Shown in pieces: positions 21,401-54,400 of a stretch of 64,000 nt of DNA (within the stretch, counting starts at the first letter, position 1; every line of letters starts with the position of its first letter). The DNA is from Octopus bimaculoides (taxonomy: Eukaryota), in assembly GCF_001194135.2 (NCBI RefSeq), contig NC_068987.1, positions 12,567,900-12,631,899 of the forward strand, in the 5' to 3' direction. Made by a program: the position numbers and the translations under genes. The notes under the pieces are model-generated. The model saw only the letters and a list, made by a program, of their open reading frames with translations, had not been told where the DNA came from and did not search any database.

Positions 21401-24400
21401 TTTGTTCCAGTCACTGGATTTCAGCCTCAGTGAGACATTGCATCAATAGACAACTCTCCTAGGTTCCAGCAAGTGACAAACTTGCAACTATCTGCATGTT
21501 AAGTAGGTGTGATAATCATTACCCCAGAGAACCAGTTACAAGTATATAAAAGTATATAAAGTACATAAAAATTACAAAATCTTTCCAATTAAAGAAAAAC
21601 TGAAATAGTTTTTGAATTATTGCTATACTTACCTTCAACATATAGCCATCCTGATGATATACTGTTGTTGACTTGACAAATATATTTTCCACCATCTTCT
21701 AGTTTAACATTAAGAATTGTGAGGGTATAATCATCACCTTCATTCTCAATGTGATATTTCCCACCATGGAAAATGTCCATCTTATTTTTGAACCATTGAA
21801 CTTTAGCTCCTGGACGGCAAAATGTTGTAGCGAATTGTACTTTTTCAGTACCTTCCATTACCTTAATATCTTCCAATTCTTTGAGGAAATTTTCAGGAGC
21901 CTAAAACAGAATTTTTGTTGAAAATTAATCAATCTTTTTTATAATTAGAATTTTAGAAATCATATCAAAATAATTATTAGTGTAACTAATAATGACTTTC
22001 AAAGATTATACTATGTATGTGTTTCATACTGTTTGCATTGATGTAGCTTTACTTTGACACTATACCAACATGCTTTTATAATCATGATTCCAGAAGAAGG
22101 GAAAAAATGACCAAAAATTATATTGTAGTTATGACGATCAGGTTATACTTTTAGGACTCCAAATATGTAGACACAAAAACATGCATGCACAAATACATGT
22201 GGCTACATGATTAAGTGTGTATATTGATTTCCAAATTTTTGAATAAATGGATTTATTCCAATTTTATTATGTCAATGAAAGAGTTGTCATTTATATAATA
22301 CCAAAGTAAAATGACTCTTGATAATTCAAATTTAACAAAATTTGTATCAGAAATATTTTTTCTTATAATTTTGATGTTAAAATCTTCTGGATTCATTACA
22401 CGATATGTGGCATAATACAAATAAGTAAAATACCAAATACTGTTAGTATAAACAAAGGAATGATTTCTTATAACATATCAATGTTAGTTAATATATAGAT
22501 ATCTAATTACTACTAGATTAAAGTAGCAGTTGCTCAGTCTGACATGGTTAATTTAGAGCTTAAGCAGGATTTGAATAAACATTCTCATTTATGTATTTAT
22601 AAATTTAAAAAGTATATACAAAAAAAAAAGTGTGCTTTTCTTTCTATAATTTTTCTTCATTAGAAATAATAGACATTAAACATTAAAAATCTATTTTAAA
22701 TTATGTAAAGTGTCGATGAGATTTTATGATATAAATTTAAATACTGTATCATATATATTAATATTATATCTTCACTTCCAATCATTAATAATTTCATTTA
22801 AATATCTTAAATAAGGATTTTGCACATAGTATTATGATCTGGTAATATGTGCTTAATAATGACATGTTAAAACATGACTGCCAGTAATAACACATATAAG
22901 GTTGATTTACTATTCATCCTTTTTGAGCATATTGGAGTAGAGAAACCTTTAACAATTTATCTTCGAATGTTTGGGATAGATTAAAATCAAATAATAATAA
23001 TAATTATAATAATAATGGTTTCTGATTTAGGCACATTGCCAGTAATTTTCAGAAGAGGGGGACAGCCGATTACAATGACCCAGCCCCCTCTCCAATACTT
23101 GACTGGTAATTTATTTTATCAACCTCAGAGGGATGACAAGCAAAAATATTTCCAATAATGAAATACTAAATTACTATTTATTTTGTAATTTGTAATGCAA
23201 GAAATAAATTTCTGATAATCATTTAAGAAGAAAGAGGTTGTTATCTATTTTTAAAACTTTATCTTATTCATTGAATATTTTCGTTTAATTGCAGAATTTT
23301 TTATAATCAAGTTATGATTTCAACAACATAAAATTTTACATCTAAAATATATCACTAAGTATATATAACATAATTTGAAACTTAAAACCAATCATGAAAT
23401 AAAGAAAACATAATATAAAGAGTACATGTTGGTGATTCTAGAATAAAGTGGCTTAAAAGTGTGGAAGGTTTCTGAAAGAGGGTTTCAAAATTGCATTTAA
23501 AATGAACTCTAATCATTTTTCAAAAGTTTTGATATAACTAAATATTGCTAATATTGAAATACATATATTTTATGCTATTTAAATATTTTAAAAAGTGAAT
23601 TCAAATAACAAATTCTTTTAAACATTCACAAAAATCTGTGTTCAATAGATTTCTATGAGGGTGTTCTAAAAACGTTCACAAAGTGGAATTGACAATTATG
23701 AAAGAAAGTTTTTTTACACAAAAAAAAAATTTACTGATCAAATTCAGATTTATGTTGAAGTACAATTGGAAACATTAAGCATTTTGTGAAATAGAATAAT
23801 TAAAGTTTAATTCATAAGAAAATGAATATAATGGACATATATGTAAAGAAAGTGAGAAAACAGTTAAAGAAATTAGTTAATTTCTAAAATACATGAAAAT
23901 AATGTAAAAATAAATTATATTTAAAATCAAATCATGTGAATGGTCTCCAAATAGTATTATCTTCGAGTTTACCGTATGATTGAGTATGATGAGTAAAAAA
24001 ATGTTGATAGTGGGCAAAAATCTTTAGTTTAAAAAGATATTACAATGGTTTTACAATGGATAGAATCTCTAATATGTGTCTAAGTATGTATCATAGAATC
24101 TCTAGTATGTGTCTAAGAATTAAGCAGTTAAAAATATAAATATGCTACACAAGTATTCTGGATATTTCAAAGCAAATATCTAAAATATTTTAAATAAAAC
24201 TTATATATAAATACATCATTTTTTTAAAGTTTTGCTAATTAAGGTTGTTAATTGTTTTTTAGAATATTGATCTTTATGACTGTTTATTGATGTATAATTT
24301 TATAAATTTTAGACGAAATTTCTTGTGTAAAAAATGAACAATCAAGAAAATATCTTTCATTGATAATCATTTTACATTTTGCATTTTATTGTCATTAAAT

Positions 24401-51400: not shown

Positions 51401-54400
51401 TTTACCTGGTTTTAACTGTCCCCAATCCAAGTCATCATCATCATCAGCTGTCTTTTTATCACCTCTGTCAGATTGAGAGAAAGAAAATTAAACGTTTCTT
51501 AGTTTTCTTGATTTTCGTGCATAGGCTTTAATATATTAATCTCTTATTAATTAATCAGAGAACTTTTAAATATTGTAGGCCTCATCAAACAGGTACTGTT
51601 GATATTCTGCATGTAGACTGACACTTACTGAGAAAATAGAACTAGGGAAGGATTTCTAGAGACGCATAAGCTTTAGAAATATCAATTGGGCAGGTTTGAG
51701 GAATGAGAAACATGAAGATGAGTAGAAGAGTGTTGGTATATCGCAGTGTTTCTTAACTTGGGTCCATATAAGAATTTTGGGGGTCCGTGCAAGCAAAATA
51801 GTAAATTTGGAAACTACATTAGTATTTTAAGGACCCATGTAAACAATTTTGCTTTAGGTTTCTTTCTCTAACGTTTTACATAGTTTAACATGTTTCCAGC
51901 CACTGAAACATGTTCTCTCAGAGAGTAATATTGCAAACTCATACAAATGAATGTGTGAAAAACAAAATAGGAATTTTGAAAGAAGTTTCTATAAAATTAG
52001 TTTTTAAACATAGAATGGTTATGGGAGCCCACCTGAATAAAATAGTAATCAAAGGAACCACACAGCTATGCCTGTTGTTTTGAAAACTTATACGATCTCA
52101 TTTCAAATATAACTGAAGTGTTCATCAAATTAGATTTAAATTGTACCATCTGAACAACTGACATAGAAAATGCATTAAAGAAAAAGTTTTGGTAAATGAA
52201 ATAAAGCTTTGTACTTACCTGTGTTTAAGTAATGAACGAAAATCTAGACTGGAATCTTTAGGATCTAGAAAAATAAAAGATTAAATATTTTAGGGAGAAA
52301 TAAATTTTACTTTGAAATTGCATTGTGAAATATCATAGTTCTTTCTCACAGTGCTATCTTCATTCTATTTAATAATTTTATCCATCCAGTTTCACCTCCC
52401 ACTATACCAGGGAGGGTTGAGGGTTTGGAGTGCTCAAACACCTCACACACGCAAGTATTTTCACACATATAGATAGGCACACAAACTCACACATATACAT
52501 ACACACACATACAAGCATGAATGTATGCTATATACCCTATGTCAGACCTAATGTTTCAAATTGCACGATTCTCTTCCGGAGTACTGAGAAGAATGATCGA
52601 TAAGACATTTAGAATAAAAGATTTTTTAAATATCATAAAGAATCCTAAAATACAACTCAAAGGTCAAAAATAATTAAGAAGGATCAGACCTTATGTGTGT
52701 GTGTTTGTGTGTGTGTGTGTGTGTGTGTGTGTGTGTGTGTGTGTGTGTGTGTGTGTGTGTGTGTGTGTGTGTGTTTATAGGGAGAGATACATACACACAT
52801 ACATGTATACATATAGTTATGTATACATATATGTGGGTGCTTGTATATATATAAAATCATCATTTTATGAAAGATTACATGGCATAAAATTCAATCCTAT
52901 AATTCATAATAGATATTAACAGTGATAGGGGTGTTCTCTTTTATATTTTTTTTATACTTATTTATGTATAATACTAAAAGCTATGAAGAAAGTGATTAAG
53001 TCAGGCAAAACTGAACAAGCCCAACTTGGTGATGATGATTGATAAAGGAATTTAAAATGTAAGTCCTAATTGATTTGTTGGTAAGAAATCGATCTTATAT
53101 TCCACTATTATCAAAATTAAAATTATGAGAGGAATATCACAACAATACCAGGTAATTTCCCCAGTATAACTTACCTTTAATGAAAACACTGAAAGATGTT
53201 GTATCAGATGTGTATCCATCATGTTCCAGCACCACAGAATATTTAGCCTCATCTTGAATTTTAGTTTTTTTTATTTCAAGACTGGCACAATTTAGCAAGT
53301 CATTGACACGGATAGCACAGCGGGTGTCATTGACAATTTCACGTCCAGCTCGGTAGAATTTAACTTTAGGCATTGGACAGTCATTGGTGTCGATTTTGAA
53401 TGAACATTTCAAAGTCTGGCCTGAAGTAAATAAAATTAAATCATTAAAATTCAACAGATGCATGTAAGAAGAAAGCAAATATAAGTAAGATACTATTAAA
53501 TCATTTATATCTTAAATTGATTTGAATGCAGTGTATTGTACGAACCCCCAAAAATGTTGTCTTAAACCTTTTGATACCAACTTGGCTGAAACCACCTCTG
53601 GCACTAATGCACAAATGTCTTGTTTTCAAAAGTTCTGAATTAAAACCTCCCATCAAACCTTAGCCACAATTTATGTTCCTAACACTAGCTTAATGACAAC
53701 TAAGTTATTTTAATTAAATTCTTTCTTATATTTAAAATTAATTGAAAGAAATACAGAGCATCTCAACAGAAATATGGTAAAATATATAATAGAGAAACCC
53801 TTTTGATACCAACCCATCTAATGTGACATCTATAACACTAACTACACCAACATTTAGAGAGTTGCTGCTGCTGTTAACTCAAACACCAGGCTATCCAAAA
53901 TGACAGGATCTATGTAAACACACATTTCTTAGACTGTATTCTGTAGATAAGTGGAGGCGCGTGGCTTAGTGGTTAGGGTGTCAGCACCATGATTGAAAGA
54001 TTGTGGTTTCGATTCCTGGACCAGGCGACTCGTGTTCTTGAGCAAAACACTTCATTTCACATTGCCCAGGTCCACTCAGCTTGCAAAAATGAGTAACGCT
54101 GCGATGGACTGGCGTCCCGTCCAGCTGGGGAACACATACGCCATTGAAACCGGGGAAACCGGGCCCATGACTCTGGCTAGGCTTTAAAAGGGCGCATTTA
54201 TTTATTTATTTATTCTGTAGATAGGTCTTTACACCCGAAATATAAATATTTTAAAAACTTTCTGCATTGTTAAAAGCTTTCCTTATTTCTCATTTCACTT
54301 ATTTTCTACTTCTATACTACAATACTTCAAGTAAACTACAACACTCTTCATTTACAATTGGTTTTAAAAAGTCTATTTCTTTCAAAGTAATACATCTTGT

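Follow-up and report, generated by a model that had tools for sequence, protein, structure and literature searches.

A D1-type twitchin linker of Octopus bimaculoides is encoded by four small exons spread over about 31 kb

Does the regulatory linker of octopus twitchin draw on a hidden set of alternative exons, or is it an ordinary molluscan linker whose few small exons lie far apart? This question is raised by a stretch of 64,000 nucleotides (nt) of Octopus bimaculoides (assembly GCF_001194135.2, contig NC_068987.1, positions 12,567,900 to 12,631,899), which is called the window in this text and in which all positions of octopus features are counted. A preliminary description of the window had proposed that a linker of 128 amino acids (aa) between two immunoglobulin (Ig) domains of twitchin is spread over about 31 kb and acts as an alternative-splicing hub. 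The D1 linker of twitchin of Mytilus galloprovincialis, between Ig7 and Ig8, was reportedly the subject of work by Funabara et al. in 2003 and 2007, and the later work is said to place the binding activity on the Ig7-linker-Ig8 fragment. Our analysis indicates that the octopus region is probably an ordinary cephalopod-type orthologue of this known regulatory linker, and that splicing of it is plausible by analogy to Mytilus.

The linker and its neighbouring Ig domains are encoded on the minus strand. Reading from the 5' side, an exon of 94 nt at 54498-54591 encodes the first strand of the Ig domain in front of the linker; this exon was defined by a scan for phase-1 donors and by reading of the sequence. 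After an intron of 1077 nt, the rest of this domain is encoded by an exon of 246 nt at 53175-53420, which ends in phase 1 (G/AT). When these two exons are joined, they form a complete I-set domain according to Pfam. The second of them matches residues 736-817 of KAL3842488.1, a partial protein of 1663 aa from the freshwater mussel Sinanodonta woodiana (P0019), with an E value of 6e-13 in tblastn.

The four linker exons follow. Exon A (52219-52264, 46 nt, phase 1>2) is bordered by AG and GTAAGT and encodes FRSLLKHR, and exon B (51406-51464, 59 nt, phase 2>1) encodes an acidic run and DWGQLKP. Exon C (44631-44725, 95 nt, phase 1>0) carries the first conserved RRxS site and a predicted short helix. 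Exon D (34639-34821, 183 nt, phase 0>0) carries RRQS, a predicted helix with KLEALE, RRNS and a D1-type site. The first exon after the linker (21633-21900, 268 nt, phase 0>1) encodes an I-set Ig domain (Pfam I-set, E 1e-25) and shows 57% identity to residues 964-1053 of the Sinanodonta protein. The linker exons and both flanking Ig exons have AG acceptors and GT donors throughout, and the spliced frame is open and continuous over the 128 aa.

The introns, counted 5' to 3' from the Ig exon at 53175-53420, are 910, 754, 6680, 9809 and 12738 nt long. We mapped twelve more exons downstream with the Sinanodonta protein as the guide, and the introns there are about 0.24-2.03 kb. All five peptides given in the preliminary description were recovered in their places on the minus strand, and they join to exactly the product that it had derived over about 31 kb. 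The exon sizes, the contrast between the long linker introns and those among the Ig and fibronectin type III (Fn3) exons, and the arrangement of one short conserved motif per exon (FRSLLKHR, a DWGx-type motif and IPDWPTLQ among them) proved to be genuine as well.

Two runs of N in the assembly interrupt the long introns. One is located at 43465-44014 in intron C-D, between a (TA)n and a (GT)n microsatellite, and a contig of a related species (L010) ends in the same CA/GT repeat. The other is located at 28589-28710 in the intron between exon D and the following Ig domain (Ig8), and is flanked by a (TA)n microsatellite. The order of exon C, exon D and the next Ig across these gaps is the protein order in the sea slug Elysia marginata and in Sinanodonta, and the scaffold is therefore collinear. 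The exon chain is independent of the gaps; a small exon hidden inside one of them is conceivable.

The identity of the protein was then considered from its domains and its motifs. Pfam recognised I-set domains on both sides of the linker and Fn3 and I-set domains in the downstream exons, and assigned no family to the linker itself. The exons of the window are collinear with 900 residues of the Sinanodonta protein. The linker carries four conserved RRxS sites (RRLS, RRQS, RRNS and RRAS), and the last of these abuts the hydrophobic motif IPDWPTL. That is, exon D has RRxS directly before L-x-D/E-x-I-P-D-W-P-x-L, between two Ig domains, which is the arrangement of a D1-type site. This site aligns with that of a Mytilus-like sequence (P0041), a UniParc fragment of 133 aa which runs from FRSLLKHR to REAKKEK. 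When the full library was searched with exon D by phmmer, 38 matches were obtained, and in an alignment of 28 homologues R-R-x-S-L...I...P.L was invariant and the W nearly so. These results uphold the view that the region is a linker outside any domain, lies between two I-set Ig domains in a giant muscle protein of the twitchin type, and is orthologous to the linker with the D1-type site for protein kinase A (PKA). No full-length protein or isoform of a cephalopod was present among the two matches to the linker with both Ig domains or among the four matches to the linker alone, and a text search of the literature for the motif string gave no match.

Two other occurrences of such motifs were observed. 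A further PKA-type site (RRAS) is encoded in the exon at 54498-54591, just N-terminal of the Ig domain in front of the linker. The string RRxSL-x-E-x-I-x-DWPxL is also present twice each in small gene models of two arthropods, Daphnia pulicaria (XP_046653787.1, P0036) and Bombus (XP_033305373.1, P0039). To judge from these sequences, the phospho-site with its DWP motif seems to be older than the molluscs and seems able to be duplicated.

Comparison with other molluscs shows how much of this structure is shared. The octopus linker is 62% identical to a gene model of Elysia marginata (P0001, at the locus L001), 65% identical to the Sinanodonta protein, and 51% identical to the Mytilus-like fragment. 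The invariant residues are DWG.LKP, the RR.S of exon C, R..S, KLEALE, a further RR.S, and RR.SL..IPDWPTL. The FRSLLKHR of exon A is identical in the two bivalve sequences and is FRNLLKHR at the Elysia locus. The D-W-G-x-L-K-P of exon B is invariant in four molluscan sequences, and this exon has the same end in Elysia. Exon C is conserved in Elysia, in Sinanodonta and at another molluscan locus (L003). At the Elysia locus, the borders around B, C and D agree with those of the octopus, and exon A is present.

The Mytilus-like fragment shares the order of the motifs with the octopus, namely FRSLLKHR, an acidic run with DWGxLKP, an RRxS segment, KLEALE, RRSS, and RR(P/A)SL(V/A). However, it has about 13 extra residues after LKP, its middle segment has diverged (KKERRPSLVDSMKQHLADSE), and the RRAS of the octopus at the D1 position is RRPS in this fragment. 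The Sinanodonta protein has an insert of 16 aa (GSKEAQQLSPALRKTS) between B and C, which was undetectable in the octopus window. We therefore regard the B-C junction as variable, because both bivalve sequences carry 13-16 extra residues at this point.

The linker introns of Elysia are 2.7, 3.6, 2.9 and 2.5 kb long, compared with 0.5-0.9 kb in the following Ig domains. They are thus the longest introns locally, as in the octopus, but their range of 2.5-3.6 kb is below the 6.7-12.7 kb of the octopus. The C-D intron is 6.4 kb in the mollusc L003. The intron between exon D and Ig8 is 0.85 kb at a further molluscan locus (L004), 2.3 kb in L003, 2.5 kb in Elysia and 12.7 kb in the octopus. What these molluscs share is that each exon holds one motif and that the introns are relatively long; the absolute length of the introns varies. 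The D1 motif and the exon structure that goes with it are older than the split of the cephalopods, the gastropods and the bivalves.

Which splicing choices does this chain of exons permit? The only skips that keep the frame are those of exon D (61 codons), of A and B together (105 nt, 35 codons), or of both. The skip of A and C together was also considered, since their total is a multiple of three, but exon B is then read out of frame into a stop, and this combination was rejected. Exon C, or another exon of phase 1>0, is required in every product. The preliminary description had called all four exons obligatory; this label cannot be kept, because D and A+B are skippable in frame. Exon D, which carries the D1 site, has the anatomy of a regulated cassette, because it is symmetric (phase 0/0) and is the only single exon that can be skipped in frame. 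By analogy, the likeliest splicing choice would be the inclusion or skipping of whole conserved exons, so that exon D would give D1-plus and D1-minus forms; A+B would be skippable as well.

In Mytilus, a twitchin isoform containing D1 is reported to be restricted to catch muscle (Kusaka et al. 2008, Fish Sci 74:677, as cited in PMC6059360), and scallop twitchin has splice variants (PMC5963113). Compared with the Mytilus D1 isoforms, as far as this citation describes them, the D1 exon of the octopus is a symmetric unit of 61 codons with conserved flanks, that is, it has the anatomy expected of a cassette. However, the equivalence between the unit spliced in Mytilus and exon D is only presumed. 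The N2/PEVK region of titin and the projectin and sallimus of Drosophila likewise have small exons for disordered linkers between Ig domains, with introns of atypical size. In contrast to the spring regions of the titin family, which have many repeated symmetric cassettes with transcript evidence, the octopus linker has four unique exons, of which one alone is symmetric.

The surroundings of exons C and D were compared with those of a related octopus by footprinting. For this comparison we used the Logan contigs L002 and L010-L012 (runs SRR11869390, SRR11869391 and SRR11869394), which align at 34483-37796 and 44055-45406 with 79-82% identity, the background being 79%. Exon D was 98.9% identical, with 2 changes, both synonymous, and exon C was 95.8% identical, with 4 differences, all of them synonymous. 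The differences being only synonymous, these results indicate purifying selection on both exons. The identity of the 100-nt flanks of exon D was 95% upstream (34822-34921, minus strand) and 91% downstream, and it reached about 99% over the nearest 80 nt or so upstream. The corresponding values for exon C were 88% and 82%. A UGCAUG is located 42 nt upstream of exon D (first base 34863), and its GCAUG core is kept in L002.

In addition to these flanks, a block at 36403-36518 on the minus strand, within intron C-D, is strongly conserved. Its identity was 96.6% over 117 columns against the background of 79% (binomial P ~1e-8). The block contains a pyrimidine tract, an AG and then CTGACAGAGCGCGTGTGA, which in the phase of the intron reads LTERV followed by a stop. 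The acceptor scored 5.0 and the best donors scored 0.6 or less; 47 nt lead from the acceptor to the only GTAA. An in-frame cassette was rejected for this block, which has an in-frame stop and is without a usable donor. A microRNA or a small nucleolar RNA was also rejected, as the folding of both strands gave no structure (z 0.27 and 1.58). Possible roles of the block are those of a poison exon, of an alternative terminal exon or of an element that controls splicing. The preliminary description had named a lack of conserved intronic blocks among the findings that would refute it, and this block and the flanks of exon D are indeed conserved within the 15% of the region that is comparable. A second stretch in the same intron, at 37117-37216 on the minus strand, also stood out in this comparison, with 95% identity over a background of about 80%; it is AT-rich and has no exon-like features.

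The first alternative to our reading is that the linker is constitutive, that is, that all four exons are always included and the introns are passively long in a large AT-rich genome, with no regulatory meaning. In this view, intron growth would be tolerated next to small exons whose product is disordered. The content of the introns bears on this alternative. The long introns are AT-rich (GC 26-27%) unique sequence. The share of repeats within the window is 2% in intron B-C, 10% in intron C-D and 8% in the intron between D and the next Ig, in contrast to 22% in the downstream part with short introns. The ten longest open reading frames (ORFs) of the introns had no Pfam match and no transposon-type protein domain was found in them, Rfam gave no family in the whole window, and a protein search with 33 concatenated intronic ORFs for further contigs of related species gave no matches. 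The poverty in recognisable repeats and the lack of Pfam matches of the longest ORFs do not favour a passive origin of the length. The conserved block and the conserved flanks of exon D also argue against it, as do the linker introns of Elysia, which are the largest there too, and the alternative use of the D1 region reported in Mytilus, as relayed in PMC6059360. On the other hand, a constitutive linker agrees with the wide variation in intron length at the linker positions among molluscs (0.85-12.7 kb between D and Ig8), and with the gastropod gene model, which joins B, C and D directly. It also agrees with the results on candidate cassettes described below. Considering both sides, we think that a constitutive linker is somewhat unlikely.

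The second alternative is the hub of the preliminary description, in which the three long introns hold several optional cassettes that are combined according to the type of muscle, each adding an actin-binding motif. To count candidate cassettes, we took segments between AG and GT that are 30-300 nt long, a multiple of three in length, and open in the phase which the intron requires. There were 527 such segments in the right frame, compared with averages of 554 per frame in the wrong frames and 496 per frame in antisense. When donors and acceptors were scored generically at a threshold passed by 6 of 7 real exons, 1 candidate was left in the right frame against 0.3-0.5 per control frame, and a laxer cut gave 3 against 1-1.5. 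The claim that several frame-compatible candidate cassettes lie in these introns is thus not supported, since their number is at the level of chance. The scored candidates listed would yield hydrophobic, Cys-rich peptides that do not resemble the linker. A tblastx comparison of the octopus introns with those of Elysia, L003 and L004 revealed microsatellite artefacts only and no common cassette. A tblastn search of the window, Elysia and L003 with the bivalve inserts and the candidate cassette described next gave nothing beyond the known exons.

One candidate resembles the linker and fits in phase. It is located at 48997-49062 on the minus strand in intron B-C, has a length of 66 nt (75 nt when extended to 48988) and is of phase 1>1. 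It has the acceptor ttttcag and weak donors, and it is the only linker-like, phase-compatible candidate that was found. Judged by similarity to exon B (xDK..ADD..L..G.QLK), it belongs to the top ~1% of the intron windows; about 20 intron windows match exon B as well as this candidate does. It falls in the same intron in which the bivalves have their 13-16 extra residues. This candidate, the extra residues of the bivalves, the conserved block at 36403-36518 and the unusual length of the introns are the points in favour of a hub. Against them stand the counts, which are no higher in the right frame than in wrong frames or antisense, the unlikeness of the other scored candidates, the stop and the want of a usable donor in the conserved block, and the result of the search with the bivalve inserts. 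We consider such a hub quite improbable. The earlier proposal of splicing regulation is compatible with the conserved block and the flanks of exon D; it receives no support from the cassettes, which are at chance level and of which none is common with the gastropod introns. Intron B-C may hold one or two lineage-specific mini-exons at most, and nothing points to a large concealed set of cassettes. Tuning by muscle type in the arm, sucker and papilla is pure conjecture.

In a third alternative, the long introns serve to truncate the protein or to start it internally, and not to choose among cassettes: the block at 36403-36518 might act as a poison or terminal exon after exon C, or a promoter in the 12.7 kb intron might start a shorter twitchin from the next Ig. 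In its favour, the acceptor of the block is good (5.0) and is followed by a stop after 5 codons in the phase of the intron, and internal promoters and truncated isoforms are common among giant muscle genes such as UNC-89. On the other side, the sequence examined has no canonical AATAAA after the block, and there is neither first-exon nor promoter evidence nor anything else beyond this one conserved block. We regard this alternative as very improbable indeed.

We now return to the reading of the region as an ordinary orthologue of the molluscan linker with exon D as its likeliest splicing unit. Several points weigh against this reading. The window stops within the Ig/Fn3 array, and its 64 kb contain no exon for the kinase domain by which twitchin is defined. 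The N-terminal exons also lie beyond it, and the numbers Ig7 and Ig8 are carried over from Mytilus. The identification of P0041, which we take to be a fragment of Mytilus twitchin, depends on its likeness to the D1 sequence and on the form of the fragment, which is like that of a product of reverse transcription PCR; no database name stands behind the label. No transcript, expressed sequence tag or annotated isoform of the octopus or of any other cephalopod was found in the collections searched. The comparison with the related species covers 4.7 kb of the 31 kb (15%), so that conserved cassettes elsewhere are possible. UGCAUG is not enriched in the region (9 matches in sense and 15 in antisense), and the conserved flanks and the single UGCAUG near exon D are only suggestive. 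In addition, the phosphorylation by PKA and the binding of actin and myosin are presumed for the octopus by analogy with bivalves.

What might the linker do in the octopus? In bivalves, unphosphorylated twitchin binds to thin filaments and forms a complex of actin, myosin and twitchin, and phosphorylation releases it (PMC6059360, PMC7589332). If the octopus linker behaves as in Mytilus, the basic and hydrophobic motifs of the unphosphorylated linker would bind actin and myosin and tether the thick filaments to the thin filaments. Phosphorylation of the adjacent serines would add negative charge, and the tether would be released. The structure predicted by AlphaFold for the Elysia model P0001 (28 aligned sequences) has two short helices in the linker at moderate confidence and otherwise no fold; the quality of the whole model is poor (mean pLDDT 50.6). 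The first modelled helix, QIEVMKMNLK (residues 32-41, block pLDDT ~70-73), is in the counterpart of exon C. The second, SADKLEALEQQQRRSSMQ (residues 77-94, block pLDDT 73-79), is in the counterpart of exon D.

Some observations on the neighbourhood were made besides. Three other molluscs have a polyubiquitin gene on the opposite strand, located a few kb past the Ig exons that follow the linker (24113-30345 in L001, 18170-19783 in L003 and 4654-6765 in L004, all on the minus strand), apparently inside an intron of twitchin. A ubiquitin motif was not found anywhere in the octopus window. In the Sinanodonta protein, residues ~390-650 form a long PEVK-like repeat (PKPEEKKPAPKPEEKKPEEK) on the N-terminal side of the Ig domain in front of the linker, and nothing comparable was detected in the window over the 9.4 kb upstream of 54591. 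Within this upstream part, at 62613-62933 on the minus strand, an open frame of 107 codons (MYPPSLRGMPDTDGYEADEDD...FFNEDDE) is rich in acidic residues and has an internal ATG and the donor GAAG/GTATTT. Pfam gave no match for this frame, which is out of phase with the next known exon of twitchin, at 54591. It may belong to a different gene, or to twitchin as an upstream exon that has so far escaped recognition. Near-identical ORF fragments are present in two introns, at 26669-26863 (minus strand) and 54770-55030 (plus strand), and more short interspersed copies lie in the downstream introns; the element that is repeated at these two places is probably similar to short interspersed nuclear elements (SINE-like).

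Finally, we considered what these results mean for the muscle of cephalopods. Catch-like tension without nervous input has been reported in the skin papillae of the cuttlefish, and the authors of that report named a D1-containing twitchin isoform as the thing to test (PMC6059360). It is conceivable, if rather unlikely, that a catch-like state is tuned by three splicing routes, namely the skip of exon D, a lineage-specific mini-exon at 48997-49062 that repeats the motif of exon B, and the stop-carrying block at 36403-36518, which would lead to a truncated or degraded product. If this were true, such three-route splicing would link twitchin to the sustained tension of the papilla or the sucker. 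Otherwise, the region is the expected orthologue of a known element, and the octopus is a new species for this linker. For the question of catch-like tension in cephalopods, the window supplies an exact exon map, in which exon D is the D1 unit.

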